64,000 nt of DNA from Oopsacas minuta (taxonomy: Eukaryota; Animalia; Porifera). The stretch covers positions 140,887-204,886 of the forward strand of contig JAKMXF010000003.1 of assembly GCA_024704765.1 (NCBI GenBank), given 5' to 3'. Each line of letters opens with the position of its first letter. Position 1 is the first letter of the stretch. Made by a program: the position numbers and the translations under genes. The notes under the pieces are model-generated. The model made no database searches and had not been told where the DNA came from. It saw only the letters and a list, made by a program, of their open reading frames with translations. Positions 6,674-61,621 of this stretch are shown in pieces.

Positions 6674-9600
6674 CTAGCTTGTTAGATCTTTGTTCTTCTG
6701 TAATATTACGAATCCTTCTAGAAGAGGAGTTATGGGTATATCTAGAAATGAATATATCCCTCATAAAATTTCGCGGAGATATATTGGCCTCAAAATATTA
6801 TACTTGCTCATATTAACTGCCTAGTTAATAAATATTGAATTTCTCTAAGAATATAGCTTACATTCATTCGTAGCTAACTCAGCTCTCTCCCCATAAGATA
6901 ACAATACAGGAGTAGAATGAGTCTGAAACCCTGTTATAGTCTTTGGCTTTCCTGCTTGTCCTACTACATCTACTGCTTGACCTACACGTACACTCACAGA
7001 CAGAGGCTTGAGGTCTGTATCTAGTGTTACCAGCATACGAGGCTGTATTGCTAAGGCTATGCAGTAGAGAAGGTAGCAAGGGTTGGAGTGCCCGATTAAT
7101 ACTAAACAAATTCACAAGTAAACTGGAGCAACTTTTCTATAGCAGCCACAGGAACATGCTAAGTTATTGTCTCACCCCTTCTACATTCCAAATATCAACT
7201 CAGGTAACTAGGGATTTAATTTATCTTTGGAACGTCAAGGGTGCTAATTGACACCCCCAGACCCAGGAAGTACAACACTTACTATTTTTAACATCCATAG
7301 CAGCTACCAATACAGTCACCAGACTACCGACAGCAACAGGAGTAAACAATCCTCTGTCAGAATGATAAGGATTTAGTGTAAGGGTACCTTTACCGAGATG
7401 TATTAGACCTTGTGCTAGTCTTACTATATAGAGATTATTACTATCCTTCTGGTAATAAGTAGCTAGTTGTTTTAGCATGTTAACTAGCCTCGAGTTGTTA
7501 GTCCCTAATAAATATATATATATGGAATAGATGGAACAATGAAACCTCCACAAACTGTTTGTCCCGTATTGACCCTTTTAATTATAGTTTATTGTATTAC
7601 AACAATACTCTTACCAGCTCCAACAATCCCCATTGCTAGTATAGCATTGTGTGCTGTCTCAGCATCATTATCATGTGATAGCTTAGATAGAGCATCAAGT
7701 ACAGGAAGCTGTGGATTAGAGGCTGATATGAGGGCTAATGCTAGAGGTACTGATCTCTTTATTACGCTATCTCCATACTGCAACTATAATATATACAGAA
7801 TTAAGTCAGTCAACTCCCGGTATATCTAACACGGATATATAGAAATACCCGCTTATGTCTGAGCCTTAAATTGTCCAAATATGGTCACAAACAGCTGAAG
7901 TACCATATATTCCATAGGTTATATCGAGTAATTATCGCGGGTACTTGAGCTTCGATATAACGAGAGTAGACTGTACGTATGTGAATTCACATAACACTTA
8001 ATAATCAAGTACAATAAATAGAATGACATACACAGATTATCACGAATATTTTCCATGTTTACAACTCATATAATGCCATTAAAACTACTCACAACATATC
8101 GCTATAGACTGCTATTACAACATACATACAGACATAACCATATGCTACAGGTGAGAAATGTCGCTAACAATGAGAATAAACTTGTAGGCTGTAGTGACCT
8201 TACAAACATGAGGAATATCGGGATACTAGCACACATCGACGCGGGTAAAACAAGCACAACAGAATGCATGCTGTTCCACGCGGGTGTTGTGAAGAAAATA
8301 GGCCGGATAGATGACGGGGACACTCGTATGGATTTCATGAAACAGGAACGAGAGAGAGGGATAACTATAAATGCGGCGAACATCGCTTTCAACTGGTTAA
8401 ATCGGACAGTTAATTTGATCGATACACCAGGCCATGTTGATTTTAACTTTGAAGTAGAAAGATGTTTGCATGTGTTGGACAGTGCGGTGCTAGTGCTAGA
8501 CGGGACCGAGGGTGTACAACCACAGACTATATCCATCAACAAACAAATGACAGAATGGACACTACCTAGACTAATATATACAAACAAAATGGACAGAAAA
8601 AACGCAGACTTCGATCGTTCAATAAAAGCACTTAGAAAAGAATTGGAAGTTAATCCGGTTGTATATACACGACCGGTTTATATCAATGGAATGTTCAGAG
8701 GTGTTGTTGACCTAATTTCAATGATTGTAAGGATTCACACAAAAAATAATATACAATGTTTCCCTGTAAACGGAGAGAATGGAGGGTTTAATGAACAGCT
8801 GATCGAGATGGGAGTAAATCGTGAAAACTTGGAAATAATAATCCATTCAAGAACCAAATTGATTGAAGAGTTAGTCAGTTTTGATGAGAATTTGTTAGAA
8901 GAATATTTCGAAGGCAAAACACCGTCACCAGAAAATCTCAAACGTCTACTAAGATCTTGCTGTGTAAATCAACAGGTCTCCCCTGTGCTATGTGGTAGTG
9001 CAGTAACCAACATAGGAATAGACTTGTTGCTAAACGCAATCGTTGAATATCTTCCCTCACCGCTAGATAGGATTGAAAGTCATTTCCCAGTCAATTTCCA
9101 CCATGATGCAAATTCCCCGTTGATAGCTTATGCATTTAAAGTAATACAAGATAGAAACAGAGGCTCACTCGTGTATCTACGTGTATATTCAGGGGTGTTA
9201 AAATCTCATTCACACATTTATAGACTAGGGGATAGAGGCAGTGAGAAGATTAATCGTTTATTGCTCAGTCAAGCCGGGGATTTGAAAGAAATCCGCGCAG
9301 TAGGACCTGGAAATATCGGCGTGGCAGTTGGCCTGAAGGAGACACAAACAGGTGACGTCATCACGAGTGACGAAACTATTCTAACAGAAATAACTAAACA
9401 AATAGAAACGGCGAATGATTGTGTTACAAAACGAACTGCAAGCCCCAGTCAAACCTGGCTTACTAATTTAATAAAGCTTAACGTGCCTGATGCAGTATTC
9501 TACTGTACACTATATGTAGACAGTAAGGAGGAAGAGAGAGAGCTAGTGAAAGCCCTGAACCAGCTGACTACAGAGGATCCCAGTCTTAGATACAAGATAG

Positions 9601-12600
9601 ATCCGAATAATGAGGACTTAGTCGTGTCAGGCATGGGGGACCTGCATCTACAGATTCTTATAGACCGATTGAAACACGAATACAGGATTATAGTCAAACT
9701 AGGGAAACTGAGTATCGCTTATCAAGAAGTCCCAACTATTGTAAGTAAGGAAGTATACGAGACGACAAGCACTATGAGTGGGAGAGAGCAACATGTAGAA
9801 ATAGGCCTGAGAGTTATACCCGGTGGACAGAACATTAAAGTTGTCAACCGATTAGGAAACGAGGTTGTTATAAGCCGCGACCAACTCAAAGCAATACAGA
9901 ATGCAGTCAGGGCAGTTTGCGTAGGAGGTGGCCCGTTAATACATGGTCCTGTTACAGAATTATCAGTCGAACTGACTGACTTTACCTGTGAAGAAGTGAC
10001 GTCACTCAATATTGTGAGTTATGCGACAAGAGAATGTTTGACTAAAGCACTACGTAATAGTGAACTAAGGTTAAGTGAACCTGTTATGAAAGTGGAAATT
10101 AAACTATCAGAAGAATACGTGGAAGCTGTACTGGCGGATTTAGCTAATAACAGACGAGGTATAGTTAAGAGAGTTCTGACAGACGCTAGGGCCAGCTGTT
10201 TAGAGGCGGAGGTACCGCTAGAACATTTACTGCAGTATAGCAATGTAGTGAGGGGGCTTACGTCAGGATATGGAGAGTATTCAAGCAGATTCCTAACCTA
10301 CAGACAGGTTGCTAACGAGCACCAGAAGACTATTATAGATAGATATAAAGGATATTAATTCGTTATTATCTGATATTGTAACTTAGCTTAGAAATAATAT
10401 GTACTCAAAGTAGGATAGAGTTCAATTGTTCTTCCTAGAGCGGCCGAAACGCGGTATCAATCGGTTCCCAACCCAGGTTCCATGGATTCCTTAGTGGTCT
10501 ACGAACGACAGTAGGGGGTCTACAGAGCGTCTTTTAAATGGGGAATGGGGGTCCATGTGTGAACAGTTGGGAACTGCTGGGTTAGGAATTTAATTATATA
10601 TGAACCTTACCAAATGCGAGAAAGTTCTGAGTGACATTTCAGCTCCTATCTCCTCCCCCATGGCTACTAACGCTATGCCCAACACAGTAATAGCTTGATG
10701 AGCTCCTGGCTCATGGAGAGCTCCAGCTACAGCTGTAGGGTCTTTTAAGTTTTCCTTCCCTTTCGTATCTTTCTCTTTCTCATCTTCCTCAGAGAAGAAC
10801 TCACTGGCTTTATGCAGAAGAGACTGTATTTTCAATACATTACCAGTTCCTAATATTAAGATAATAAGGCATTTGAATACGGGCGACTTAATTATGACGT
10901 CATGAATATTACCTGCATAAGCACACACATCTAATAGAATAACACCAAAATCCTTGAGATGAGCAGGTAGACTATCAAATGCATTAGCTATGTCATTAGC
11001 TGCTTTCTGCTTACCAAGGAATATTAAACCAACTGCCAATATAATGAATCTAAATACATTTTTTTGTTAAAAACCTATATTATAATGGTATAGAATATGT
11101 CAGTGTGTGATGGAATCTTATGACAGGCTTCAATTTAATAAGAATTAAGTTTCCAACCTGTTGTATGTAGATTTGACATTGTATCCTTCCTTACTGAAAA
11201 TAGTTAACAGCTTTAAAGCTAGTTCAGCATTACAAGATCCCAAAGCAATAAATCCTATTGACAGAGCTGTAACACTGATAACCTCACTGGTTATTAGTTT
11301 ATCATTTGCATTAGATACTTTATCTGTGAATACTTCTGTTAACATCACAATTAAGTCTTCACGGCATGATCCAGCATATGCTAATCCTAATCTAATAGAA
11401 ATACAATGCGAGCTCGTTAATAAGAACACAAACAGATTAATAGTGGACTATGTGAAGAGGTTCTTGTCGTTATAACTCACCCTAGAATAGCAGCTATCTT
11501 CATTTTGATATGACTAACATTAGCATCTGATACAAACTCAGATAGAATACCCATAGCAGGATCACACTCATTCCTTATACCACAATTTACTATACCGGTT
11601 GCTAAGAGAGCTCCTGCCTACAGAAAATACGTCAAAATATAACAGCTGATCGTAAGCATAGGAAGCACCATAAGCGCCGACACAAGGAGTATTTCACGGG
11701 TAACATCGAAGTAATTATCGCGGTTCCTTGAGCATCGATATAACGAGAGTTAACTGTACAATATATCATAGCTTACTTTAATTTCAATATCTTGTGAATA
11801 TATATACTTGTCAATATGTGTCAGACCTGTATCAACATCCCATAACATTATAAGTCCCAGAGAAGCTACAGCGCTAATCATTCCGTTATCTTTAACTTTA
11901 CCAAGCCAAGCTTGATTATCTGCATCCATTGTAACTTTATCTTTACCAAAAGCACAATTAACAAATCCATTAACGAACGTGGAAGCTAGGAACATTTTGC
12001 TTTGGTCTTGTGTAGCAGTTCTAGGAGGATCTGAGTGATTCTTCATGACGTCATCTGGTAGTTTTGGTTCAACGATATCTAACTGGAGAGATGGAATGTA
12101 TCAATTCTTAATTGTAATTGGCTGAAGATATGTACAGTGGAACATCGTTAATACGTATTTCCTGATAAGAACTTATTCAATTGGTATTACACCGGATAAA
12201 GCGAACAGATTTGACCGTCTGTTAGTATTCCTATTAACGAGGCTACACTGTATGCGGAACTTACTTCTCTAGCTAATGCCAGGAAATGTTGATTTAATTG
12301 AGAATTAGAAATAATCTCTCGTAACAACTCATTACTACTCTCCATCTCATCTTCTGGTATTTCTAAGAATACTTGCTGTCTGCCTAGCATAAAGCAGAGC
12401 TGTTTCTTCAATAATCTACGAGATGAATCGAATTAAAATGTAGTTTGGTAGGAAATTGGAAAGTGTTCCCATCAAATGCCTATTTTCCCATCCATGTATC
12501 CAATAGATTAACTCACTCATCGTTACAAGAGAAGAATATATCTTTAATGAGTTTGAGATCATTCAGCTGCATTGCTAGTTTCATAGCTGCAGCTAGCTTA

Positions 12601-16165: not shown

Positions 16166-17536
16166 TTAATCTCTAATAACACGCTTAACATATAAATACC
16201 ATCTATTGTGAGTAGGACAAGACTCGACCAGTAACCAACTACACGTACAGAGTATAGCTCTAACAAGTAACAGAATCTTGAATACTAATACTCTATCACT
16301 AACGGGTATATCCACAGGGTAATATGACTGAGTACCAATTGAATACAGCTGACAATTTTGTGTAGTAGAATTTGTTAGGAGATCAGGCCATAGAGTATCC
16401 CAGCCGTCTGAATAAGGCAATGATATGTAGTGTATTTGTAGATCTATGTACATGAGGGAGAGACATATGATAAGCGAGAGGGAGGTCAGAAAAAACGCGA
16501 TCACATTGAGAATAATAATATACTGTTTCTTATGAAAAGCTTCTAATACATATTTCCTATTCAAACTTGGTAAATCTATTCTATCAGCTAAATACACTAC
16601 AGTGACAGTTGACAGGGAATAGAATATGCAATGAGATGGCAATGACAGTTTTGACACGTTCAAAACTGAGTTAAGATCTAGATTACTGTATGATGCTAGT
16701 GTGTATACAAATACTGTATGCCATATTGTGATACCAACCAGTAGGCTATGTGATAGTAGCCCAAAGGTGTGAAAAATAGGGTTACATATATGAGCAAGGT
16801 TCGTACGAGAACATGACAACCTTGAGGAACAATTGGAATGCGGGATAGGGTCAATTGGAGGTGTGTCTTGCTTTGAAACAGGAATAAATCTACCGTCTTT
16901 CCTTTCAAAAAACGCCTTTTCAGATTTCATTAGGAATTGTGATTGCGTATTATGTGTAGAGATCGGGTTGCCAAGGATGGTAGTCTCGGTATGTGAGGCT
17001 ATGTCTTCCACTGATAGGAGATGGATAGGTTCATATGATACATTCAGAGGTTGTTGTAGGTGGACATGAGGGGGCGGTTCATTAGGTGTTACAGCCCTTC
17101 TAGAAAAGTAGCATTTATTATAAACAATATACAGACAGTAATTATACTTTTACAGATGTTCCCAACCTTGGAGTCCATGAACCACAGGTTGAGAACTTCT
17201 GCACTATTATATAACTCACACAGGGGAGCTACTGTCAGTTTCCAGCGGGGGTAAAGGTCTATTAGAAGTAGGCATTACTGTATCTAACTGTATAGAAGGG
17301 GAGTGCTTCATAATTCTACGTTTCTTCTTTTTCCTAACACCAGTGACGCCACGAGGTAATATCGGATCTAGACGTGACGCTGGCCTGGCTATCAATACAG
17401 GAGAGGGAGAACCAGAGGGAGACAGGTCAGGGAGAGGTGTGTCCAGGGCTAAATCAATGTCTTGAGAATGGTCTGTGATTACTTCATCAAGTGACTGTGT
17501 TAAATTCGTTATTATATCCTCTGATAGTGACGTCAT
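16166..17536 (-). CDS. TMEM237: Ciliary transition-zone membrane protein TMEM237-like, 2 exons
   Basis: RKKKKRR basic N-terminus; FGLLSHSLLVGITIWHTVFVY..LADRIDL resembles TMEM237 [27 protein letters not shown]; an in-frame GT-AG intron joins the two ORFs. Confidence 0.75.
17153..17201. mobile_element. 49-bp hAT-like mini-MITE (family D) in the TMEM237 intron
   Basis: TIR cagatgttcccaacc / ggttgagaacttctg; flanks tactttta and cactatta match 6/8, like a decayed 8-bp target duplication. Confidence 0.6.
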
Positions 17537-17916: not shown

Positions 17917-19687
17917 TTACTTTTGAGCTCTAACTTTGGATCTAAAGCAAGTAGTAAATAATTCCCAATTATTCTTACCCACAAATGTTCCTCTCTTCTG
18001 CCATCTACGCAACACGTCTAAGAACTCTTGATAATCCAGAAATCCATCTTTTTTAATATCGAAAATAGAAAATAGAATCTCTAGAAGATTATTATCAAAC
18101 TTATCACCGCAACAAATCTCGACTGCGTGGTTAAATTCGCGTTTATTAACACCTTTTCCATCAACAGTATATATACTCACTACAGTAGATAGATCTTCTA
18201 TGTTAAGAAGGAGGTCACAGAACCTTTCATATTGATGTAGGTCGAATTCTGGGATAGCATTCTTTGAATAATTACGATATAATCTAGACTACAAGGAAAA
18301 CGACAGTAAATATGTGTAATAAGGATATATCGAAGTCTTAAATTGTACAAATATGGTCACAAACCGTCAAAGAAACATAATCTCACCGGTATCTCGGGGA
18401 GTAATTATCGCGGTCCTTGAACTTCGATATAACCAATCAAATATATGTCACTTGGAATGTTTGGGAGCATATTTGTACAATTTAAGACTTGGATATAACG
18501 GGGAGTTGACTGTACATACGAACTTTAATTTCCTTCATAGACAAGCAACTATATCTCATAATTAACTTCGCAAAATCCTCCCCTGATATAGTTTTATTGC
18601 CTTTAGCATATACATTAAACTCATAAAGCAGGACTTCCTTCTGGAAAGCATCAATGAATGTAGAAAACTCATCAAACGATAGAGTTCCCTTTCCATCAGT
18701 TCCGAACAGATGTACCAGTAGAGACGACTGTACGCCTGTAGTCCTAGGATCCAGGAGCTCAGGAACATTCCCTAACATAGAATTCTGTACCTGAATAAAC
18801 TCACTAAGCTCTATACATCCGTTACAGTCTCTATCGTATATACTGAATGCTATCTTGAAATGATGATTACACTTAGCAAGAGTTGATACGAGGAATCTAT
18901 ATAATAGGCAAATATTGTGTATGTTAATACCACACAAATTCTATGAATACAAACCCCTTGTGAACGAGATATACGGTTTATGCTGGATATTAGCACCATC
19001 CTCTGGAAAATGGTTCTCATATATTCCTGTATATTTTATTTCGGCTATATGAACATGTATTGCTACTCCTAAGGGTGTTCTTATAACCGGCATCCACTGT
19101 ATCTCACTATTTCCCTATGACGTAATCACTTAAACTCACCTATAATCTGGATATGACAGTATACCATCATTCCAAATATTCTTCAAGAATCCCTCATGAT
19201 TTCTCTCCCTATTAGATGACGTCAAATCCGACCATTTATTAACCTGTTTGGTATCTACCTTATTAACAGAGTGTGCATTCTTATCAAGTGTTGGGACTTG
19301 TGTTACTAAGCGGATAAAACTAGCAGGAGACATGTACAGAACTCCCTGGTATAAATAGGTCGAATTTTCTGCGAAAATTCTCTCCTGTTTCGTCAATTTT
19401 GAATCACCAACTAGTTCATTTGCGTGGAATGTTTGTTGTGTGTGTATATTTGTTGTTGATAAGTTTGGTTGTTTACTTTCGCGTTTTGTATATAAATACA
19501 AAGTAACACCTCCCCCGAGTAACAGGGCAAGGATTATCAGTCGGTTAGATGTATATTTCGAGGAAGTTGTGTCTAGGATTTGAGTTGTGGACTTCGTGTG
19601 TATTTTGTTGAATTTATAAGAATTGTTGGGTTGAAATTGTGATAAGTTTGTGAGAAGTGAATAACGAGATATTAGAAATCTAGACAT
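17917..19687 (-). CDS. Mitochondrial calcium uptake protein, MICU2/3-like (EF-hands), multi-exon
   Basis: Presequence plus TM segment; LYMSPASF; GILSYPDYRFLVSTLAK..FKIAFSIYDRDCNGCIELSEF; IFDIKKDGFLDYQEF; C-terminal FTTCFRSKV. Confidence 0.85.
18301..18512. mobile_element. MITE family A (rearranged copy) in a MICU intron
   Basis: ttaaattgtacaaatatggtcac core; right end gatataacggggagttgactg-ta. Confidence 0.65.
18973..19099. mobile_element. MITE family B (CAGTGGATGC ends) in a MICU intron
   Basis: accatcctctggaaaatggttctcatatattcctg...gggtgttcttataaccggcatccactg-ta; near-identical to 48410-48525. Confidence 0.75.
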
Positions 19688-20144
19688 CTCATATGGTAAG
19701 CTTTTATAACTGGAAATATAGCAGGAAATGACAGATAATTTCGGTGGGACATTCCGAAAAAACTGGGGTATTTAGGGAGGCCCAGCCCCTCGGGACTACG
19801 CCTATGGGATACCCGTGTGTGTGCAGGGCCACCGTAAGAGCGTCACCAGGATCATTCAGCTTCCTAGTCGGATTGCAGCTGGTTGGGAAGTAGGGAGAAT
19901 GAATGATGGACAGCAATATACGGTTAGTATGACGTCATAAAACAATGAATATACGTAAATAAAATCAACATTGCATAGATCCTAATTCACATATAATCAC
20001 ACATTTTGTAATAATTATCTTCTAATAGCAAATAACAAGGAAAAGAACAATAAATTCAATTTTTGGGGAGAAATAATACAAAATACTACACACATCTGAA
20101 TGGAAGCTTAAAATAGCAGTTAAAAAGGATACCAGTAGAGTATA

Positions 20145-20993
20145 CTAATAATGCTGATAAACAGTAAAGTTCAATACGATATTGATACCAATAATGATAC
20201 AAGACAGAGCTATGCCAAATCCTGCGAATATCCTTGCTACCCTCGCGTTAGTCAGGGCCTCAGCATAGCGTCCATTCTCTTGATCAGAGCTAGCCATTAT
20301 GAGGAAGCAAAGAGCAATACATCCTAAGATAGGACAGAACAGTATAGCGATAATTACGTATATCCAAAGGAAAGGGTTCACTACTACTTGACGAATAGGT
20401 GGAGTCAAATATACCTAAATAGAAAATGACGTCAGTATTGTAAAGCTATTCAGTAAACTCCCATTATAAGAAGTGAATACCGCATATAGCTTCAAAGTAA
20501 TTGATTTACCCAGCTTACAACGAATGAAGCAGGGTCCCGAGTAAGTAATAATGAGAGTTTAGTGTTAGAAATATTATGGAAAACAGGACACTTAAAATCC
20601 ATAATTATTAAATTTGTATACAGTCAACTTCCGTTATACCGAAGCTCAAGTGACCGCGATATAACCTATGAAAATATGTGACCATATCTGTACAATTTAG
20701 ACTTATACGTAAGCAGGTATATCAATATATCCGTGTTAGATAAAATGGGAGTTGAGTGTATATTATTCTACGAACTCTACCTGTGTAGTAGGCACAGTCC
20801 TCTCAGTCACAATAACGGTACGAGTTGTACCATGCACTGGTGGTTGGTGAGGATATTCAGGTGTTACTGTGCCCTGATAAGGAGGGGGTGGGGCATTTGC
20901 GTAGGCATTAGGCCCTGGCTGTTGGTAACGAGGTTGCTGGGAACCTGAATAGGTAGGGGGAGCGTATTCTGGGATTAATTTATCAGTAGACAT
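20145..20993 (-). CDS. CD225/dispanin-family membrane protein (IFITM/PRRT/TMEM233-like), 2 exons
   Basis: Pro-rich N-terminus (PPTY, PPPY), then NPFLWIYVIIAILFCPILGCIALCFLIMASSDQENGRYAEALTNARVARIFAGFGI. Confidence 0.78.
20621..20758. mobile_element. MITE family A with TA flanks (dispanin intron)
   Basis: ta-cagtcaacttccg...gggagttgagtg-ta. Confidence 0.8.
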
Positions 20994-21471: not shown

Positions 21472-21652
21472 TATTGCACATTTCAACGGTAGTACGTATG
21501 ATTCTAATTAAAATTACAAAAGTCTTTCTATCGCTAACTTATCATTAATAATAATAAGATGGTAGTACACAGTAATTATCGACCTATTCAACCCTACAGG
21601 ATTATAACAAAGTGAATAACAATTATCACATGAATACATGACGTCATAATAA

Positions 21653-37200: not shown

Positions 37201-38894
37201 TTTCAAGTACAGAGTCAATTGACAGATGTCAAACTGAGGATAATTCCTCAACAGAATCACTCGATAAAATTACTGATATACAAACTCCAGTAGCTTCACC
37301 GCGACATATCCCTCAAACAGCTGATTTACGTGTCAAATACACTGACAATGACGTAGAATTATCCTGGACTGTACCTCCTAATATGCTCGACACCATACAA
37401 GGATATCATGTTTCAATTGGTAGTGAAATTACACAATATATAGAAGGAGCGAGGAACACATTTCTATCGATGAATTCTCTAGAAGATAAGCTTAATCCAG
37501 GTAGATACACACTAGTTATTTGTACAGTTACGAACTATGGATATTCTGATCCTGTAGAATGTACTATAGACACAACACTACTGAATCCTCCGTATGAATT
37601 GAGGGTAGTAGAAGATGGAGCTTGTGTGTTAATCAGCTGGTCTTCACCTGATACATTTTCCCTGTCAAGTCCATTAGTATCATTCACAGTGTATTTGAAT
37701 GATACTATATTAACTAGTGTTGATTTCTCAGATTTCTTGGTAAGTAAGGGTGTGTCAATTCCTCGTGTTGATCTTTTGAAGTTTTACGAATCTAGCCCCG
37801 ATCAACAAATGAGTCTCACTGTCAAATCATTTCTGAGTGACGGACGTTTCTCATGTCCCAGCGAAATTCTAGATCTCCCTCTGCAGTTTCTAACACGTTT
37901 TGAGTCAACTTCCGGTAGCATGACAGTTGAATCTGAATCCAGTGAAGGATGTTCCAGACATTCCACAAGCTCTGAAAGTGAAGTATTAGAAGTATTTCGT
38001 AGATCTTCTATAGAATCTGATCAGCTGTTGAAAGCAAGACAAAACACTTCGGATGTAGTAAGCAAACCTCCTCTAGACAGACATACACAACTTATCCAAT
38101 CAACGGGCTCCAAACAGAGGCAGAGTTTCACACCAAATGAAGAGAATCTTTTCACAGAGCTAGAAGCACAAGGGGAGCCAGATTTCTCTCAGGAGATGTT
38201 TGCTCTACAACAAAATTCAAGTCAATCTGATAGTGACGATGATAAAGCTCTGTATGCTGAGATTCCCCCTCTTGACGTCACTGTTACTTACTACGTAGCT
38301 TTATACGACTATAATCCTGTAGACCAATCACCGAATAGAGGCGAATATCAATCTGAATTGCCTCTTAAGAAAGGCGAAGTTATAGCTATTTTCGGTGGAA
38401 TTGATAATGAAGGATTTTTCACTGGACAAGTTGACACAAAAGTTGGGTTAATTCCTTATAATTTGATTGAAAAGATTAACTTGTGCGATGTGAGCGGAGA
38501 GACAAGCTCAGCGCTTTTGTTCCAAGCAACTAAACAGGCCTTCCCCTCTCGAAATTTCACAGCTCTCTACTCCTACAATCCACGTACTGACTCTCCAAAC
38601 TGTGATGATGTTGATGACGAGCTCTCTTTCAAGAGTGGTACCTCCATCTCCATATTTGGAGATGTTCAAGACGATGGATTCTTTATTGGAGAACGAGACG
38701 GACAACTTGGATTTGTCCCTTCTAACTTCATCGAGCCTGTCGATCATATTAAACCACAAGACACCAAACAATCGACAAACGAATCAACAAATACAAAAGG
38801 CGCTACCCACCCACAAGGCGAAATTCCTAAATCGAACAAAAATATTTTAGCTAAAACAAAAGGCATATTCAAAAGTCTTTCCAAGAAATCCTGA
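34247..38894 (+). CDS. RIMBP2: RIMS-binding protein (coiled coil, SH3, FN3 repeats, 2x SH3), about 1482 aa; exons 34247-34532 and 34732-38894
   Basis: RYNYDPLVSSPNPHPEQELSLKAGD..DQDGFYLGEL.GGKRGLVPSNFVE; FN3 VELSWTVP; ALYDYNPVDQSPN..ELPLKKGE; ALYSYNPRTDSPN..ELSFKSG..GFVPSNFIE. Confidence 0.9.
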
Positions 38895-41271: not shown

Positions 41272-41919
41272 ATGAATTATAACAGAGGACCAAATGTATC
41301 GCATGCAGATGACATGGAACAAATGCGGGGTCAGATCGACAAGAAAACTGACGAGTCTCTAGCCGCTACCCGAAGGATAAAACAGATAGCTGTCGAGACG
41401 GAGCGTACCGGTGCGGACGCACTCATCACTCTACACGAACAAGGAGAACAGCTAGACAATGTTGAAGATAATCTGGAGGACATAGGCTCTGCCATGAAGA
41501 GAACAGACAAGGAATTGACAGAACTTGAAAAATGTTGTGGGATCTGTCGGCTACCAGGTAGTAGAGTTAAAAGCTACCAAAAATCTAAAAACTACAAACA
41601 AGCGTTCGGAGCAAAGGCGCGTAAACAGGAAATGATTAGTAGCCAACCAGGCAACTATGGTGCAACCGGGAATGTGGTAACAAAACAACCAAAAGGCCCA
41701 ATAATAAACCGAGTTACAAATGACGTCAGGGAAGATGAGATGGAAGGAAATATGCAAGATGTTAACAGAATGTTGGATAACATGAAAAACATTGCGGGGG
41801 ACATGGGTGATGAATTGGACAGACAGAATGACCAACTTGGGCGTATTGAGAAGAAAATAGTAGCAAATGAGGAACATATTCGTGTGGCTAACTATAGGGT
41901 AGCAAAACAAATGAATTAA
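41272..41919 (+). CDS. SNAP25: SNAP-25/23 family Qbc-SNARE (intronless)
   Basis: TDESLAATRRI..EQGEQLDNVE; palmitoylation cluster KCCGIC; INRVTNDVREDEMEGNM..DMGDELDRQNDQLGRI. Confidence 0.93.
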   Translation: MNYNRGPNVSHADDMEQMRGQIDKKTDESLAATRRIKQIAVETERTGADALITLHEQGEQLDNVEDNLEDIGSAMKRTDKELTELEKCCGICRLPGSRVKSYQKSKNYKQAFGAKARKQEMISSQPGNYGATGNVVTKQPKGPIINRVTNDVREDEMEGNMQDVNRMLDNMKNIAGDMGDELDRQNDQLGRIEKKIVANEEHIRVANYRVAKQMN

Positions 41920-42289: not shown

Positions 42290-43024
42290 ATGGCCGGGAA
42301 TGAGAAAACATCATTCCGTCTAAAAAAACGTTCAAAGAAGAGCGCAGTTAACGCTGTTCCCTTAGAAAAATTCGACTACTTAACTCTGCGTAAAAACACT
42401 CACTGGCTGGCTATTATTGGCTATGTACAGCCATTATTTCGTGAACCGTTCTTATATCCACGTGGCATGGATCCTGTGGACGTTAACAAACGTATAATAC
42501 TACTACAAAGTAATAAGGAGAATGAAGGTAAACTACAGTATGTGCTTCAAGAGGAAGTTAAGCGGTTTTTAGTTGCTATAAGGGACAGTTTGAAGAATTT
42601 ATCCGGTCCTGAGTTATTGAATAAAATCGCTTCAATTTGGAAATCTTTATTTGCTGTTACAATACCGTGCATGACTGCTCTATTCTCTCAATTTGAGACT
42701 AAGATGCCTGTGCATAAGATTATAATGAATATTTTTCGTGACGTCATCTTGTTTAAGGTTAAAATCAAAGATAGTCTTGTCGATGCAAGAAAGGAAATTC
42801 AAGACGCAGAGTTTCCAGACCGGAGTTTAATACCTCGCGAAATTACACACATGTTTCTGATCTTACAAATGGAGATCGATTTCTATCCTGAGTTACAGGA
42901 AATGATTATTTTAGCCATGGATGATCAGTATGAGCCTATATGGGCCCCTGTAATCTCTATTATAGAGGAGAGATGTGATTCTCCTGAATTCTCTGAAGTT
43001 GGAGTTCAGAACAAAATTCAATAG
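42290..43024 (+). CDS. PRR5: PRR5/Protor-like mTORC2 component (HbrB-like domain)
   Basis: IRDSLKNLSGPELLNKIASIWKSLFAVTIPCMTALF..IFRDVILFKVKIKDSL resembles PRR5 LRDKIRFYEGQKLLDSLAETWDFFF..HFRNAITLSVKLEDAL. Confidence 0.72.
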   Translation: MAGNEKTSFRLKKRSKKSAVNAVPLEKFDYLTLRKNTHWLAIIGYVQPLFREPFLYPRGMDPVDVNKRIILLQSNKENEGKLQYVLQEEVKRFLVAIRDSLKNLSGPELLNKIASIWKSLFAVTIPCMTALFSQFETKMPVHKIIMNIFRDVILFKVKIKDSLVDARKEIQDAEFPDRSLIPREITHMFLILQMEIDFYPELQEMIILAMDDQYEPIWAPVISIIEERCDSPEFSEVGVQNKIQ

Positions 43025-46959: not shown

Positions 46960-48012
46960 ATGTCTGTTGGAGCCAGAAGGATGAAGGGACAAGGTGACTA
47001 CCAACAGCTGAGAAATGAGCTCGAGGCGCTGAAACACAAACTAGCTCAATCACGAAACGCCGTAAAAGACCGCGAACTCCTTGACGTAGCAGGCAGTGTA
47101 GAGCCTCTGCCTAAAATATCCCTGCATTTACGACAAATTCTCAAGGGCCATCTCGCGAAAATTTACGCTCTTCACTGGTCTAGTGACTCCCAACATCTCG
47201 TGAGTGCATCTCAGGATGGAAAGCTAATAATCTGGGATGGCTACAGTACTCTTAAGATACATGCTATCCCGTTACGTTCCAGCTGGGTAATGAGCTGTGC
47301 CTATTCACCTAGCGGGACATTTGTCGCCTGTGGTGGTCTTGATAACATATGTTCCATCTACAACCTAAAAACCCGTGAAGGGAACATAAAAACCAGTCGT
47401 GAGCTCGGGGGACATACCGGCTATCTGTCTTGCTGTCGGTTCCTAGATGACGAACGTATCATGACGTCATCTGGTGATATGACGCTAGGCTTGTGGGACA
47501 TAGAAACTGCTAAAATGATAACACACTTCAAAGGACATAGCGGTGACGTCATGAGCTTCTCTCTATCTGAGGATAACAATACAATGATATCAGGGTCTTG
47601 TGATAGCACAGCTAAGCTCTGGGATATTCGTAGCGGAGAATGTGAGCAGACCTTTTTCGGGCATGAAGCTGATATCAATTCTGTGAGCTACGGACCCTCT
47701 GGGACTATTTTCGCTACCGGATCGGACGATTGTACTTGCGCAATGTTCGATATACGTTCTGACCAGATGCTCGAGCAGTATGCAATCGATGGGATGAATT
47801 TCGGCGTTACTTCTGTCGCATTCTCTCACTCAGGCAGACTGATCTTCGCCGGATACGACAATACCACGGTTCAGATTTGGGACTCTCTGAAACGCGATCG
47901 TCTAGGAGTAATTTCTGCGCACGAAAATCGCGTTAGTTGTCTGGGCATACCTCCTAGTGGTATGGCTCTATGCACTGGATCATGGGACACGCACTTAAGG
48001 ATATTCAACTAA
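46960..48012 (+). CDS. GNB: Heterotrimeric G protein beta subunit (GNB1-4 type), intronless
   Basis: [67 protein letters not shown]. Confidence 0.97.
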
Positions 48013-51477: not shown

Positions 51478-53869
51478 ATGGAGTTCCAAGCTAGAGTAGA
51501 AGAATGGCTGCGCTATGACCGTAACAAAGTCACACGTAAGGAAGTAACAGAGATATGGGAGGAAGGGAACTCTGTTGAGCTAAGGAACAGGTTCGGGAAA
51601 CGTATGTCATTTGGAACAGCTGGTCTCCGAGCGACCATGGGAGCTGGATATACTCGGATAAATGATTTGACGGTTATACAAACAACCCAAGGACTAGCTG
51701 TATATCTAATAGAGACCTTTGGTAAGAAAGAAGTCGTTGAAAGAGGGGTTGTAGTGGGATTTGATACTCGACACAATAGCGAGAGATTTGCACAGCTCGT
51801 TGCTGCTGTCCTAATTGGGAAAGATATTCCTGTTAGTCTATTCTCTCATTATGTGCCTACTCCATATACTGCTTATGCTGTGAAGAAGTTGAAAGCTATT
51901 GCTGGGGTTATGATAACAGCTTCACATAATCCTAAGGAGGATAATGGATATAAAGTGAGTTGTATAGAAGTTTATGTACAAAAATGTAATTCTAACATTT
52001 TATTGCCTTGTGAGTGTGTAATTTTTATCTTTCCTTCAATAGCTCAGTTGGTAGAGCGGAGGACTGTAGTGGTAAAATCCTTAGTAATCCTTAGGTCCCT
52101 GGTTCGAATCCGGGTTGAAGGAAGTATCTTTTTAGCTTTTTGCAAGTTAAAATACTGAAATGTGTCAGGTTATGTATACCACGCAGGTGACGTAATTTCG
52201 ACCTAGACATTGGCTTGTAAATACGCAAGTATTGAAATACCGAAAAGCACCTAAATTTTTTTTCAGGATAGATATGATGATCTTAAAATAGCTCTCTTAT
52301 TTTGTACACATCATGAATTCTTGAGAAGTTTATGTGCAAAAAATGTAATTCTAACATTTATTGTCTTACGAGTGTATTATTTTTATCTTTCCTTCAATAG
52401 CTCAGTTGGTAGAGCGGAGGACTGTAGTGGTCGAAACCTTAGTAATCCTTAGGTCCCTGGTTCGAATCCGGGTTGAAGGAAGTAACTTTTTGTCCTTCTA
52501 CAATACAAACCATTTTGGACCATGGATAAATGTCCAAGCTCTCTATTTCATGACTTCAGTTTACTTCTAGTTATACTGGTGTAATGCAGCACAGATCCTC
52601 TCGCCACATGACAAGGCTATCTCTGAAGCAATAGTAGCTAACCTGGAGCCCTGGTCTTGGTCATGGGACACCTCAAGTATCCCTACCTCCCCTCTTATAT
52701 CAGATCCTTATGCAGATATATCACGAGCATACAACACTGAGCTGGCATCAATTGGGTCACATTTCATAACTAATAGGAGTATCCCTCCTGAAGTAGTGTA
52801 TACTCCTATGCATGGAGTAGGAACACTGTTTGTTCAGTTGGCCATGACCGCTATGTCTTTGCCGTTATTCACGCTAGTTCCAGAGCAGTCCGAGCCTGAT
52901 CCTGACTTCCCTACTGTCAACTTCCCGAACCCTGAGGAAGGTAAAGCAGCTTTAGACATCGCGACAAAAACCGCGGATGAGAAAGGTATCCCTCTGATCC
53001 TCGCGAATGATCCTGACGCAGACAGACTAGCTGTCGCGGAGAAAGAACCTGGAGAAGCCTGGCACGTATTTTCTGGCAACGATCTCGGTGCATTATTCGC
53101 ATGGTGGGCACTCAAGAACTACAGACACAATAACAAAACTGACCTATCAAATGTATACATGGTCTCTACTGCAGTATCTTCACAGATAATACGCTCGATG
53201 GCATTGAAGGAAGGATTCAAATTTGAAGAAACTTTAACCGGTTTCAAATGGATGGGTAATAAATACCTCGAGCTTACAGCAGCAGGAAATGACGTCATAT
53301 TCGTGTACGAAGAAGCAATAGGATTTATGTATGGTGGAATTGTATATGATAAAGATGGGATAAGTGCTAGTGTTGTAATTCGCGAGATGGCGGCATGGCT
53401 GTATGAGAAAGAATCAACACTATCTCAACAGTTACAAGAAATATACGATACGTACGGATACCATTTGAGTAGGACGTCTTACTTCTTATGCTATCAACCT
53501 GAGACTATCATTAAAATATTCACACGACTCAGAAAGGACGGCGAATACCCCAAAACTTGTGGTTCGTATAAAGTGTTAAATGTTCGTGACGTCACAGTTG
53601 GATATGACAGCTCTAGAGGTGACAAAAAATGTATTCACCCTTTGACTCCAAAATCGGAAATGATAACGTTTTACCTTGAAAATAATTGTACAATAACTCT
53701 ACGTACAAGCGGGACTGAGCCTAAAATCAAGTATTACGGGGAAATAATCAAGGAACCAGGGATAGGAACGAAAGACAAACTGATTGAGATTCTATTAGAA
53801 ACGCTGAATTTTTGTACTGAAGATTTCCTTCAACCGAAAGCTAATAACCTCATCCACCAAGAGAAATAG
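51478..53869 (+). CDS. PGM2: Phosphoglucomutase-2 / phosphopentomutase; exons 51478-51954 and 52571-53869
   Basis: MSFGTAGLRA; MITASHNPKEDNGYK|LYW; ANDPDADR; EEAIGFM; LRTSGTEPKIKYY. Confidence 0.95.
52033..52122 (+). tRNA. tRNA-Tyr(GTA) with 17-nt intron (52070-52086), inside the PGM2 intron
   Basis: CCTTCAATAGCTCAGTTGGTAGAGCGGAGGACTGTAG-[intron]-ATCCTTAGGTCCCTGGTTCGAATCCGGGTTGAAGGA; downstream T-run. Confidence 0.95.
52391..52480 (+). tRNA. tRNA-Tyr(GTA) second copy with 17-nt intron (52428-52444)
   Basis: Mature sequence identical to the first copy; intron differs (tggtcgaaaccttagta versus tggtaaaatccttagta). Confidence 0.95.
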
Positions 53870-56431: not shown

Positions 56432-59400
56432 ATGGCTGAGAGAATTACGTCATCATTAGAAGAAACAATACATGAGGGGTTAGGATCTGGTAGCGAGGAA
56501 TTGGATCATAATTACTCCTCCTCATCTTTCTACCTACTCGGTATTGTTAATCAGAGTCAGAACGCTAGCTTTGGGGTAGAAGAAGCAATGTTCCGACCGG
56601 ATAGTCCTCATTTCAGAGAAGTGTTGGACCAGGTGTACCAGAAGTGTTTAGATATGGATAACCAAGAGGGGAGGGAGGGACCTACAGTATGGCAGGTTGT
56701 CGATACTGTACGTGGGTTCATGTTCCAGACAGACGAGGGAGGAGTAGGCAATGAAAGTGAAGTATTGTTGAACTCTCTATCTGTTGAGTTAGAGCTACAG
56801 GTATTATTATTGTATGTGTTTACCTTAATAACCAAATTAGCAGTATGAATGTTGTACAGTGAATACCGGTTATAAGAACATCCTTGGGGATAGCAAGGAA
56901 TATATGAGAACTGTTTTTCCAGAGGATGGTGTACTACTTTATGTGTATACTTCTCAACCAAATAAGTAGAATGGAATGTCTCCATTATTGGTATTTGTAT
57001 TTCATAGAAATCCCCCGGAGACTTCCTGACCAGAGAGAGTTTCAACATAGCTATGGAGAGCTGGATACACTCAGTCAGTCAACAGAATAGGAATTTTGGG
57101 GGAGCTGGTTCGTCCTCTTCTGGGGACAAATCGGACCTCTACTCCAATCCCATGGGACACACACACTCTCTAACAGGGTCGTATAGTCTAGAGGGTACAG
57201 GGGGGGTTAGCTCAGAGAGGGAGTCTGAGCATATGTCTGAGAGAGTAGAACAGCTGATGATATACTCAGAACAGCTGGAGACTGAGAATACTCTACTCAA
57301 GGAGCAGGTAACTTACACATATACATAGCTGTACTATTATACTTCATGGTTTTATGAATACAGTCAACTCCCATCATAACTATCCTCAAGGGACCGCGAT
57401 AATACTTCGGTATAAGTGGAGTTAACTGTACTTATATAATGACGTCATATAGCTACTTGAGAATGAAGAAACTATATCAGAGCTTACAGATATGAAGAAT
57501 CGTTTAGAGAAACACCTAACTGATCTAAGAACAGCTCTTCATAACAACCAATCCATTACACTTGAGAACTCAGCTCTGAAACAAGAACTATCAAAACTAG
57601 ATTCAAGTTTATCTCAGATTAAACAGAAGCTATTCCAGGAAACAAAACACAGACAAACACTAGAATCAGAGCTGGAGCAGTGTAATAGAATACAAGGTAA
57701 TACTAATTCTGTTGTTAATGGGGAAACATATTTAATGGAGTCTTATGGAGAGATTGTACAGCAAGATCCTGCCAATGGAATGGTGAGTAATTATTGAAAG
57801 TATATTTATTGCAGTTATAATTACCAAACCTAACGAGCAAGGAACTTTTCCATTTTTGCTATTCTCCTGGATATTTCGGGTGTAATAGTGGGGGAAACGT
57901 GAAATCCGGGAAATTTGTAAAAGGTGTTGGTAATTATCTGCATTCCTGTTGTCATGAGCGTTACCAGGTATGATTTCTTTCGAACGAAACATTTCAACCT
58001 TGAAAATAATCGTTTTAGTTGCTTATTTTACATTTAAAGACAACAAACACATACACGAATATGACAACATGTAAATATTCTCAAAATTTGTTATAATTGT
58101 ATACTTCTTAAATATACACAACCATCTTCCTCTCTAATCAATACCATTACCATATTCCCTACTACAGACTTCTCCATATAATTTAAATAGTCCGTATCCT
58201 CATCTACCAATTTCTTTACAATCCTAAACTCAATCTCATCCACTACCAACAGTCCTTTTGTCGTGTCTAGAAACAATAGGTTACCTTCGGAATCCATACA
58301 CATTCTCCTTTTATTCAAAAATTTCTTATATCCAAGTGGATACCTCTTTATGCTCGGGCCCTCGTTAATTACACTAATCGAGTAAGTCTCAGTAGAAAAC
58401 ACTATGTACTCGTCAGATTTAATTATGACGTCACTTGGAAATGAAACTTTTACGATCGTGACTAAGTACAACTCATCTGTAAATATTAATATCCTAGAAT
58501 TCCCGTTATCACATAGATACAGTAGATTCCTGTTATCTGTAGATATTTCTCTGGGATTACTGAGGTTATATTTTCCATTGTATTTACCCAACAGTTTACC
58601 GTCTGTATTACACATAGAGATATCGTTTTGAAACGTATCAACAACGTATAGGCGATTATTTAGATATTTGATACACCATGGAAATCGATTCTCATCCTTT
58701 GTAACAATAATTCGCTGTAAGCCTGTTGTTAATTCTATCTTTGCTATATATCGAGCTGTGTGATCAGCTAGATAAACTGTTTTACCGTCATCTTCAAATG
58801 TTAAACTACCTGAATTGTCAACTTGTATTGATTTGTCTATCAGCACTTTATCGTCTATAGGTTTGGATTTTCTTATACTTTGATAATTCCCCATTCCTAA
58901 CCATTTCCTATGTAATTATATTAGTATTGTGCATCCATTCATATTGATCCTCTATGGTTACATTATAATCCAATACAATTGTACAGCCTAATAATGAAAA
59001 AAACAGTGGATGCCATGCAGGTTATTAGAACACCCATGGGTGTAGCAATACATGTTCTTATCACGGTATAAATAGACAGAAATATGTGAGAACCATTTTT
59101 CAGTGGATGGTACTTATAACCAGCATCCGCTGTATATATATTTACGAGTCTTGATTCTATTGTTATTATAGGAAGAGATACAAGACAAGCTTGATATAGC
59201 TACAAGTGAACTAAGCCACCTATGTGAGGAAAATGAACATCTTCATCAGAGAATACTATTCTTAACAGACAAGAACGAAGACCTCTGCCAACAAATTGGT
59301 GATCTAGAACAAGAACTCGGACAGAAATCCCTAACCACCCCCACAAGCAAACACAATTCTAGTCCTCCAATTTATCACACCCCCTCGTTAGAACAAGAAC

Positions 59401-61621
59401 TTACAGGAGCTGTATACACTTCTCCTATACGTACAGAACGTCGGTTTTATTCATCAACACCACTCAACTCTCTACATCTAGCTAGAGAGAGTATATTCGA
59501 TAAAAGTAATTCATCTCTGGAGCTGTTAGAATCACTCAGTAATAATCCTAAATGGAAAGAGCTCTGTAGCATAAAGAGTATTAATTGTGACGTCATAACT
59601 CAGAAGACTGGTGAGATTATGTCAGATTTGAATGAGCTAGATTGTGGAATAGAATACTCTAAATTGTTGGACAAGTAAGTTGTATAGAGACATAGTACGT
59701 TCACTTACAGCCCTTACCTTACCCGATTTCTGATTTGATCAAATTGTCCATTTTACGCTGCACGCTAATGACTTGTTTCATAGCACAGGGTAACCTCCAC
59801 AAAAGGAGACGCCGAAAAGTGCTAACCCGTTTCCCCATTTCTGCAAAGTCGTCCATTTGTATGAGGCTAGGAATTAGCTTTATTTATTTTCACTCTGTTT
59901 CCAGAATTTCCCCGTTTTCATAGGCCCCGTAAGTGGAGGTTACACTAACTGTAATACAATTCGGTGTAATTGCGCTTCTTTATTATGATAGATTCCGTGC
60001 TAAACATCTCCAATTACAATCAGAATTAGAAGAATCACTGAAGTTGAGAGGAGAATCTGAGAAAGAAGTTACTCAGCTACAAGATGAAGTAAACAAACTT
60101 AGAGAACAAATAAACAAATTACAACAACAATTACAAGATTTATCACATGTTAAATCTCATGGTGATACGTTAATAGCTGAAATATCCACAAAAGATGGAG
60201 TCATAAAACAGTTATCAGGTGAACTGGACGAGCTCTCTCAAAAATTAACTCTCAATGATTCTGAAGGAACAGAAAACGCGAAACTTATCACTTCTATTCA
60301 CACGAAAACAAATCAAATTCAACAGCTAATAACAGACAAACAAAATCTACAGAATAAACTCACTGAGATTACAAATCAATTACAAATACAAATGAAGGAA
60401 TTACAAAGAATAGAAGCTGAGAATATTGATATAAAGAATCAGCTGATTGAGACTAGAGAATTGCTTAAAGTTAAGACAGATGAAGCTCAAACAGCTGTAC
60501 AGTCTCATCAGCAGATACTCGCGGAAATTAACACCCAGCAAGACGATACAGCCCGTCTCACAGAGCAGCTACAGCTAACTAGCAACCAGTTGGAACTATT
60601 TCAACAAGAACATTATGCTTGTCTTAAAGATCTCTGGCATATGACACAGGGCTCTCCTATGGACCCATCTTTCCGACCTACATATCAACAAGTTAAGAAT
60701 GCTATCACACAACGAATACAGTCACCTAACATCGCGAATTTCAACACATCACAATCTCTACCATGTAGTCCCACTCGTCTATCGAATAGCGCTCAAAACA
60801 ATTCTACCTTATCATCACTAACTCCAACAGGTTATTCAACTGAAAAGAACTTAATGCTTACTCCAACGAAATATCTTTCTAATCATGACGTCAAATCCCT
60901 CGAGGAGCGTGTCCGAGCTATACTGATATGGTATTCATCAGCTCGTTATACAACTAAGCCTACTTGCCAGGCCTGGAAACAACACGTCACTGGACTAGAA
61001 GGTAAAATAAGCAATCAGCTGATTGAGTTAGATCAAGCACTAGTTAATAAGAATTATAAACAGGCTGGTAAACTCCTGAAACGGTTAAAGAATTCAATCA
61101 GTGTACTGACATATTCGTCGTGTAGAGTCGGGCGATTGGAACAGGAATGTTGGGATCTTGATAACTATGGTATACTCCAGGAGTATATTGATATTTTAAA
61201 GCGAACTCCTCGTGATAACTCCACACAGTCTCTATCATTAGTAGATAATTCTATACATAGAAATACACCTTATAGAAATGAAGAAGAGATATTTATTGAA
61301 ACACACAAGAATCTATTTCCAGATTTCAGTGAGGAATTTAATGAACTGAAGAAGAGAGAGATAGCTCTGCAATTTAAAGCAGATGAACTTTCTAAGACTT
61401 TGAAAACTATTAAACCGGCGAACAATGGTGTCACATTTCGCGGAATTCTTGTGAACTTCCATTTAAGTCTTTCATTTTTCTTCCTACTCGTATTAGTTTA
61501 TCTTTTAATGGGACCTTTCCCTGAAAGCCTACCGATTATCCGCCATAAATTAGTCTTCGGACCGGTATTCTCTTTCTCTAAATACTTCATTGATACTTCT
61601 GAATTTACTCCAATCATTTAG
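56432..61621 (+). CDS. Long-form LRMP/IRAG/KASH5-family protein (EF-hand-like, coiled coil, MRVI1-like, tail anchor with KASH-like luminal tail), about 1043 aa; exons 56432-56800, 57008-57307, 57453-57782, 59172-59674, 59992-61621
   Basis: All five exons join in phase by hand. LTRESFNIAMESWI resembles KASH5 VDLDTFLVVMRDWI; KRLKNSISVLTYSSC-RVGRLEQE..LQEYIDILKR resembles LRMP KKLEKSI..LGAINQE..MIQHVENLKR; TM plus about 35-aa tail ending TPII. Confidence 0.7.
57361..57428. mobile_element. 68-bp internally deleted MITE family A with TA flanks
   Basis: ta-cagtcaactccc..ggagttaactg-ta. Confidence 0.75.
58091..58894 (-). CDS. Stand-alone NHL-repeat beta-propeller protein, intronless, nested antisense in an intron of the LRMP-like gene
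   Basis: VYLADH; FPWCIKYLNNRLYVVD; LSNPREISTDNRNLLYLCDNGNSRILIF; N-terminal MG (possible myristoylation). Confidence 0.8.
   Translation of the reverse strand: MGNYQSIRKSKPIDDKVLIDKSIQVDNSGSLTFEDDGKTVYLADHTARYIAKIELTTGLQRIIVTKDENRFPWCIKYLNNRLYVVDTFQNDISMCNTDGKLLGKYNGKYNLSNPREISTDNRNLLYLCDNGNSRILIFTDELYLVTIVKVSFPSDVIIKSDEYIVFSTETYSISVINEGPSIKRYPLGYKKFLNKRRMCMDSEGNLLFLDTTKGLLVVDEIEFRIVKKLVDEDTDYLNYMEKSVVGNMVMVLIREEDGCVYLRSIQL
59004..59132. mobile_element. MITE family B, both ends present
   Basis: cagtggatgcc..ggttattagaac...cttataaccagcatccgctg-ta. Confidence 0.75.
59786..59947. mobile_element. MITE family C in the last intron of the LRMP-like gene
   Basis: cagggtaacctccac...gtggaggttacacta. 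Confidence 0.65.

Follow-up and report, generated by a model that had tools for sequence, protein, structure and literature searches.

The locus and the iterated word

The terminal 64 kb of contig JAKMXF010000003.1 of the glass sponge Oopsacas minuta (record positions 140887-204886, assembly GCA_024704765.1), referred to here as the window, holds ~27 genes in the record's calls. Its coding share is roughly 56-60%, its GC content 37.3% and its observed/expected ratio (o/e) for CpG 0.76; the non-coding part amounts to 25.4 kb at 34% GC. Spread over 51 kb of this window and more than 14 of its genes is the palindrome TGACGTCA, at a density of ~1 copy per 2.8 kb (Table 1). An earlier note on this DNA had listed 23 exact copies against ~0.7 expected, nine of them extending to ATGACGTCAT, and had placed seventeen in coding sequence (CDS), including overlaps with the start codons of TMEM237 (17528) and RIM-BP (34248). 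Every coordinate checks out exactly, the nine extended copies are confirmed, and the null models used here give 0.47-0.78 expected copies. Our classification, in which exon limits are approximations based on open reading frames (ORFs) inside the record's gene ranges, likewise arrives at 17 coding sites, and the two start codons are annotated ATGs. The coding sites read T-GAC-GTC-A (Asp-Val) in 12 or 13 cases and TG-ACG-TCA in five, and the frame giving an in-frame TGA is never used, as required of coding sequence. The six non-coding sites comprise three in introns (10895, 20427, 57440), two in intergenic DNA (19930, 21080) and one in a 3' untranslated region (UTR; 21639).

Dinucleotide-preserving shuffles of the window (n=100) yielded a mean of 0.78 copies and a maximum of 5, and the Markov expectation is 0.65-0.70 at order 1 and 0.47 at order 2. 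TGACGTCA is the top over-represented 8-mer of the window, standing 49-fold over the order-2 Markov expectation and ~33-fold over chance, and the runner-up 8-mers are overlapping shifts of TGACGTCA itself. GACGTC carries T..A flanks in 23 of its 27 occurrences and TGACGT is continued by C in 24/34 cases, while the ~10 TGACGT per strand outside the full word are, by estimate, near the base-composition prediction. No excess was found in the window for the 12 classes of one-mismatch neighbours (18 observed vs ~19.6 expected) or for the CpG-deamination products TGATGTCA/TGACATCA (4 vs 3.5 expected), and other bZIP and bHLH words (TRE, C/EBP, PAR, G-box and ATF6-type) are not enriched there. Outside the eight positions the preference is graded: base -1 is A or G at 22/23 sites and, with the half-sites combined, T or C stands at +1 in 87%, giving the symmetric extended consensus RTGACGTCAY.

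A step function of this kind, with the exact word alone enriched, would be expected if TGACGTCA were a by-product of DNA modification and repair. An enzyme pair acting on GACGTC or TGACGTCA, such as a methyltransferase with a mismatch-specific repair activity, would turn near-sites into the perfect word through heteroduplex or damage repair, and the word would spread without a function of its own. This explanation seems unlikely to us, if well worth keeping in view. A CpG-centred glycosylase bias would not yield specificity at all 8 positions together with graded purine/pyrimidine (R/Y) flanks, and the explanation would need an unknown sequence-specific system; animals are not known to have sequence-specific repair of this sort.

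Two other words of the window deserve mention. One of the single-mismatch variants, TTACGTCA/TGACGTAA, is present 6 times where 1.7-1.9 would be expected; the decayed orthologous RPN1 exon site has this same state in two of the related loci described below (L004 and L005), and the variant may represent the most frequent decay product or precursor. A further word in excess is ATCAGCTG, with 21 copies (both strands counted) against 2.8 expected, in 17 places (e.g., 35872, 55158, 60438 and 61014) with unrelated flanks; four of these form the 10-bp palindrome ATCAGCTGAT and six lie in RIM-BP coding sequence. Its excess could reflect a weaker iterated word of E-box type or an effect of Gln-Leu peptides.

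Codon and amino-acid usage at the sites

The ORF segments of the window hold 18 copies of TGACGTCA. Permutation of synonymous codons within each segment gives 1.02 copies (maximum 6 in 2000) and permutation of whole codons 0.33, so that the codon-aware nulls leave the count unexplained (0.3-1.0 vs 18); the earlier note had named a codon- and dinucleotide-aware null as what might account for it. Comparison with other Asp-Val pairs, also proposed there, indicates that GAC-GTC is specific to the T..A context. It encodes 13 of the 38 Asp-Val dipeptides, and in all 13 the preceding codon ends in T and the following codon starts with A; Asp-Val pairs in the T..A context are thus GAC-GTC in 13/15 cases, where codon usage predicts 5%, as compared with 0/23 in other contexts. 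This confinement rules out codon or codon-pair bias as the cause.

More generally, the word occupies 18 of the 35 positions at which it can be reached silently (Asp-Val 13/19; Leu/Met/Val-Thr-Ser 5/16). The permissive peptides are themselves somewhat in excess, numbering 35 against 24.9 +/- 5 in amino-acid shuffles (P = 0.036), and by our own calculation the log advantage of the perfect word over its neighbours is ~3-3.6 in every context. Cheap positions that are near saturation would also suit a product of modification and repair. At some sites the protein itself differs. At the 9997 site of EF-G2, relatives have GGG ACC TCT, GGC ACT TCT and similar, with Gly or Glu where Oopsacas has Val; the word being absent in the relatives, its gain required a Gly to Val change and two silent changes. 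At 47462 the G-protein beta subunit reads IMTSSGD where human GNB1 has IVTSSGD, and the Val to Met change adds the A that completes ATGACGTCAT; at 47544 the peptide GDVM is the same in human GNB1.

CpG retention in a methylated genome was considered and rejected as a sufficient cause: it is insufficient because the shortage of CpG is already part of the expectations, and 8-mers with a central CpG are less conserved than the average 8-mer. It is nearly certain that the excess is not due to chance, to codon-pair bias, to a repeat family scattered through the genome or to a fault of assembly. The dinucleotide null and the two codon-aware nulls are exceeded ~18- to 50-fold, the flanks are unrelated, the contigs agree and the same sites are found in other assemblies. 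DNA contigs of the sequenced sample span the six sites between 17528 and 21646 with zero differences, and RNA-like contigs from that sample span three of those six, also with zero differences; because both agree with the window, the TGACGTCA sites are not assembly artefacts. The RNA-like contigs also confirm three introns in the interval 17001-23000. In that interval, contigs from run X5 (another study, with another organism label) differ from the window by ~4-9% in the aligned pieces; they probably come from a near relative or from a diverged Oopsacas population.

Distribution of the sites relative to genes

Table 1. Location of the 23 copies of TGACGTCA in the Oopsacas minuta window.
Position	Location	Codons, peptide or context	Remarks
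9353..9360	Coding, mitochondrial EF-G2 (GFM2-like)	GGT GAC GTC ATC (G-D-V-I)	
9997..10004	Coding, EF-G2	GTG ACG TCA (V-T-S)	Oopsacas only
10895..10902	Intronic, RPN1/PSMD2 (minus strand)	9-10 nt past 5' splice site	Annotation reads through as CDS
12046..12053	Coding, RPN1/PSMD2 (minus strand)	D-V frame	
17528..17535	On annotated TMEM237 start codon (minus strand)	ATG ACG TCA	
19217..19224	Coding, EF-hand gene (minus strand)	L-T-S	Exon bounded by RNA joint 18896/19140
19930..19937	Intergenic	243 nt upstream of EF-hand gene ATG	No long ORF at site
20427..20434	CD225 gene intron (minus strand)	13-20 nt upstream of 3' splice site, within branch-point-like TACTGAC	ORF segments, RNA depth
21080..21087	Intergenic	87 nt upstream of CD225 ATG	Annotation
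21639..21646	3'UTR, ATP synthase subunit d gene	7-14 nt past stop codon	Annotation, RNA depth
26192..26199	Coding, single-exon myotubularin-FYVE gene (minus strand)	N-D-V-I	
34248..34255	On annotated RIM-BP start codon	ATG ACG TCA	
38273..38280	Coding, RIM-BP	L-D-V-T	
41721..41728	Coding, last exon of SNAP-25-like gene	N-D-V-R	
42739..42746	Coding, 244-aa single-exon gene	R-D-V-I	
47462..47469	Coding, G-protein beta (GNB1 orthologue)	I-M-T-S-S-G-D	
47544..47551	Coding, G-protein beta	GGT GAC GTC ATG (G-D-V-M)	
53290..53297	Coding, phosphoglucomutase gene	N-D-V-I	
53587..53594	Coding, phosphoglucomutase gene	R-D-V-T	
57440..57447	Intron of 1043-aa gene	6-13 nt upstream of a 3' splice site	ORF segments
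58426..58433	Coding, unannotated NHL-repeat ORF (58094-58894, minus strand) nested in intron	S-D-V-I	Pfam NHL match
59588..59595	Coding, 1043-aa gene	C-D-V-I	
60886..60893	Coding, 1043-aa gene	H-D-V-K	

The sites bear no fixed relation to gene landmarks. An annotated ATG lies no more than 250 nt away from four of the 23, where random placement predicts 4.65 (P = 0.71), distances being measured to annotated start codons, and distances of the sites to stops likewise show no departure from random placement. Twelve of the 27 genes have no site and some of the others two to four, a Poisson-like distribution, and the gaps between sites are near exponential (coefficient of variation (CV) = 0.93, n=22 gaps; low power). 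Random distances to ATGs and stops, Poisson-like spacing and uneven numbers of sites per gene are evidence against the word as a promoter element or as an element present once in each gene, and a promoter-proximal core element is ruled out by the lack of ATG or stop enrichment together with the Poisson-like numbers per gene. The earlier note had suggested a genome-wide motif, either protein-bound or generated by methylation or repair, rather than a set of promoter cAMP response elements (CREs). The second part of that suggestion is borne out by the ATG test; the genome-wide extent is supported indirectly, by the enrichment seen at six of the seven loci of relatives described below.

Non-coding DNA of the window holds 5 TGACGTCA against 0.226 expected (22-fold), an enrichment similar to the 18- to 54-fold found in coding sequence under the codon-aware nulls. 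The same enrichment factor in both kinds of sequence, and Poisson-like spacing with no tie to gene landmarks, would also be expected of a product of modification and repair.

Ordinary gene-specific CREs could be displaced into neighbouring exons by a compact genome and spliced-leader (SL) trans-splicing. SL trans-splicing has been reported in the glass sponge A. vastus (PMC10282587). Such regulation would also account for the positional conservation of individual sites, one non-coding site included, and is consistent with a number of sites near the number of genes (23 vs ~27), with two sites on start codons and two lying 87-243 nt upstream of an ATG. The word is, moreover, the canonical high-affinity CREB/ATF site. 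As an account of the whole set, however, gene-specific regulation is improbable. It is opposed by the lack of ATG enrichment and the Poisson-like distribution, with 12/27 genes siteless and some of the others bearing 2-4 sites; degenerate sites and half-sites are not enriched; and the filling of half of the silently reachable coding positions is implausible if regulation alone placed them. It is possible that a subset of sites are gene-specific CREs, the candidates being those on start codons (17528 and 34248) and those at 19930 and 21080, upstream of an ATG by 243 and 87 nt.

Almost all of the sites are in sequence that is transcribed, and the three intronic sites are within 20 nt of a splice site, two of them overlapping a branch-point-like TGAC, which might suggest an RNA-level element (UGACGUCA) acting in transcripts, e.g., in splicing or RNA-RNA pairing. 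A signal read in RNA need not be a perfect palindrome with symmetric flanks, however, and would have no reason to occur equally in both gene orientations and in intergenic DNA, and the branch-point overlap is more simply read as a "cheap" half-site. We regard a role at the RNA level as very improbable.

The unrelated flanks of the sites indicate that TGACGTCA is not a repeat family. A repeat family, a transposon target duplication and an excision footprint were each rejected on the basis of these flanks, the gap-free coding alignments and the absence of the word from copies of a miniature inverted-repeat transposable element (MITE), an absence that the earlier note had also recorded and that holds for the local copies. 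This MITE-like short repeat, with a core AATTATCGCGG beside CCTTGAGC-TCGA, is present at 7933, 11716, 18406, 20654, 31421, 34663 and 57394; its copies show very high DNA-contig depth, and many joints and loose ends begin there.

Conservation of the sites in related assemblies

A protein search with the EF-G2 exon recovered five orthologues on long contigs of ENA assemblies, with 77, 73, 71, 71 and 58% identity. Seven loci from five related ENA assemblies, presumably of glass sponges, were compared, two of them obtained via orthologues of the NHL-repeat ORF. The EF-G2 loci of the relatives are syntenic with the window (Beclin, SNW, RPN1, EF-G, Fe-ADH, TMEM237). Six loci of the four closer assemblies contain 4, 3, 3, 2, 4 and 4 sites, or 20 in 122.8 kb against 1.47 expected (~14-fold), and nearly every GACGTC in these closer relatives is the full TGACGTCA. 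The relative with 58% identity has one TGACGTCA at its locus. The density in Oopsacas is ~2x that of the closer relatives, and permissive EF-G positions are occupied in 2/3 cases in Oopsacas, 4/13 in the closer relatives and 0/3 in the distant relative.

Across glass sponges, individual copies are conserved in position even though silent divergence is saturated. With each of the six EF-G-region loci (L003-L008) set against every other in both directions, 30 of the 60 sites that could be aligned are retained perfectly, as compared with 10.5% of all aligned 8-mers and 5.9% of central-CpG 8-mers at these loci. Between Oopsacas and every relative, identity is 0.31-0.39 at 4-fold silent sites and 0.55-0.59 at 2-fold sites; since silent sites are saturated, retention of the word reflects constraint and not recent ancestry. 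The 9353 site in EF-G2 retains its three silent positions in L005, L006 and L007, making four species with Oopsacas; L004 has TGACATCA and L008 TGAAGTCA. At the 10895 site in the RPN1 intron, a four-species alignment keeps TGACGTCAT exactly, although the intron beyond the word is unalignable and the short spacer on the exon side is variable. The 12046 site in the RPN1 exon is common to Oopsacas and the most distant relative, L008, and has decayed silently in L004 and L005 (G to T on the window plus strand, sense GTC to GTA), L007 having TGACATCA. The TMEM237 start (17528), NHL (58426) and 59588 sites are each common to Oopsacas and its closest relative: the first is kept in L004 with the N-terminal peptide while the upstream sequence has diverged, the second is kept in L009 with one mismatch in L010, and the third, in the 1043-aa gene, is kept in L009 and absent from L010.

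The comparison with relatives that the earlier note had proposed reveals both gains and losses, all by substitution. Losses are silent changes (GTC to GTA, GAC to GAT), CpG transitions and amino-acid changes, and gains involve one to three substitutions. At the 53290 site L010 has AAT ACC GTC ATA (N-T-V-I), an amino-acid difference, and at 53587 it has CGC GAT GTA ACA, with the same peptide and three silent differences. No indels were found at coding sites in the alignments with relatives, which indicates that the sites arose by substitution and not by insertion. The CpG-transition products (TGACATCA) in relatives imply that the CpG is imperfectly protected, a further point against a modification and repair system.

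Neighbouring genes and other features

RPN1/PSMD2, a proteasome subunit, is annotated as two minus-strand genes, of which 6674-7915 encodes the C-terminal and 10590-13729 the N-terminal part. The EF-G2 gene (8073-10358, plus strand) lies antisense between these parts, apparently within an RPN1 intron, and likewise in 5/5 related assemblies. Between SNW and RPN1, L004 alone among the relatives has a 1302-aa single ORF (4159-8067; Pfam DUF7932) without TGACGTCA, which looks like a lineage-specific insertion. The NHL-repeat ORF at 58094-58894 (minus strand) is intact, encodes 267 aa and lies antisense within an intron of the 1043-aa gene. An exact-protein look-up returned no recorded gene with an identical product; a search with this ORF recovered four orthologues in ENA assemblies (43-51% identity) and no Oopsacas paralogue, and in the relatives an array of NHL genes follows. 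The phosphoglucomutase exon gave no match against PDB. At the contig end (63071-63734) a CGTATT hexamer array of ~86 units is followed by a 23-bp repeat of 6.7 units, which may be a chromosome-end or satellite region.

Comparison with known iterated words and bZIP sites

That a highly iterated exact word can override codon choice is textbook knowledge for bacterial genomes. Chi and the uptake signal sequences (USS) and DNA uptake sequences (DUS) of bacteria are short exact words that occur ~1 per 1-5 kb, mostly in genes, where the choice of codons and peptides makes room for them; what maintains them is genome-wide selection or drive and not local regulation. They are asymmetric and orientation-biased, with roles in RecBCD recombination or DNA uptake, and the sponge word differs from them in being a palindrome and in its eukaryotic host. 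A uniform, substitution-driven pressure limited mainly by protein constraint is, by this analogy, the signature of bacterial genome words and not of gene-specific enhancers.

The closest likeness in form is to HIP1 (GCGATCGC) of cyanobacteria, a highly iterated palindrome to which two methylases have been linked and whose function is unsettled (PMC4390886, PMC13756078), a tie that speaks for modification and repair in the sponge as well. Like the sponge word, HIP1 is an exact 8-bp palindrome with a central CpG-type core and an excess of at least an order of magnitude, and it lies largely in coding sequence via codon choice, with site-by-site conservation (PMC4390886, PMC13756078). The sponge word differs in residing in an animal nuclear genome, in its sequence and in having no known cognate methyltransferases. 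HIP1 is described as quasi-periodic, whereas spacing of the sponge word is Poisson-like at the low power of 22 gaps, and a sponge offers no counterpart to the part in DNA uptake that HIP1 is now proposed to play.

With the CRE the sponge word shares an identical core, TGACGTCA, and the form of a symmetric dimer site on double-stranded DNA. ATGACGTCAT is the optimum of ATF-type dimers, and the A/G...T/C flank preference in the sponge matches it. CREs lie close to promoters and are degenerate, their half-sites are functional, and a gigabase genome contains thousands of them; in the sponge, by contrast, the perfect word alone is enriched, at ~1 per 2.8 kb, mostly in exons and unrelated to gene starts. 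The M26/CRE meiotic hotspot of S. pombe (ATGACGT, optimum ATGACGTCAT) is bound by the Atf1-Pcr1 bZIP dimer and acts independently of promoters, inside coding sequence. It is the same 10-bp palindrome as in the sponge, but hotspot motifs are expected to erode by conversion from the cold allele, whereas the sponge sites are conserved and accumulating. Our literature searches found no account of TGACGTCA being in excess in sponges, nor of any eukaryote with a highly iterated palindrome, and the Oopsacas and Aphrocallistes genome papers make no mention of TGACGTCA excess.

Proposed basis of the enrichment

With its enrichment, exactness, context independence and positional conservation, TGACGTCA is genuinely a DNA-level word, an exact palindrome iterated many times in the nuclear genomes of glass sponges, the genome-wide extent being supported indirectly; it is therefore held by pervasive selection or drive, and its copies do not form a set of promoter CREs. 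The palindrome is perfect, its flanks are symmetric, and it is found in genes of both orientations and also outside genes, which implies that the word acts on double-stranded DNA. A specificity that spans 8-10 positions and is graded at the outer ones agrees with the energy landscape of dimeric DNA-binding proteins, and a protein dimer fits the graded R/Y flanks and this specificity better than does a CpG-centred repair bias. The reader would thus be a symmetric dimer, most likely a CREB/ATF-type bZIP homodimer to judge from the word.

We give about an even chance to pervasive weak selection for binding of such a CREB/ATF-type bZIP dimer in a generic, density-type role. A pressure about equally strong in coding and non-coding DNA would keep the word wherever the sequence can afford it. 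In genes the word would be made by point substitution, through codon choice at Asp-Val and Leu/Met/Val-Thr-Ser and sometimes through an amino-acid change. Each bound site would then confer a small generic benefit of density type instead of regulating a particular neighbour gene; candidate benefits include chromatin opening, marking and dispersed initiation in a compact, trans-spliced genome. More tentatively, and a shade short of an even chance, the word may be an animal counterpart of HIP1, Chi and USS, in which tens of thousands of ATGACGTCAT-type sites (by extrapolation) would be selected for one abundant dimeric protein. At a log enrichment of ~3-3.6 that selection would be strong enough to dictate codons, and occasionally amino acids, even in conserved proteins (G-beta, EF-G), and the sites would serve the chromosome generically, for instance in self-marking, in the organisation of chromatin or in dispersed initiation, and not the regulation of single genes.

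Several points weigh against selection for a bZIP dimer. Before correction for composition, the raw density of sites is higher in coding (0.47 per kb) than in non-coding DNA (0.19 per kb). A normal transcription factor tolerates degenerate sites, whereas one-mismatch variants are not enriched here. Selection and a drive resembling biased conversion predict identical patterns in these data. Every statistic is based on 64 kb of Oopsacas and ~145 kb of relatives, Oopsacas itself being sampled at one locus, this window.

Significance

If the enrichment is genome-wide, a sequence-specific DNA reader would press measurably and uniformly on a whole animal genome, conserved coding sequence included. 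Its sites would then provide thousands of natural instances for the study of bZIP recognition and its evolutionary cost, and the word would be a non-neutral force on synonymous sites, to be modelled in sponge phylogenomics and in codon-usage work. The word may also offer a route into the chromatin biology of the syncytial glass sponges.

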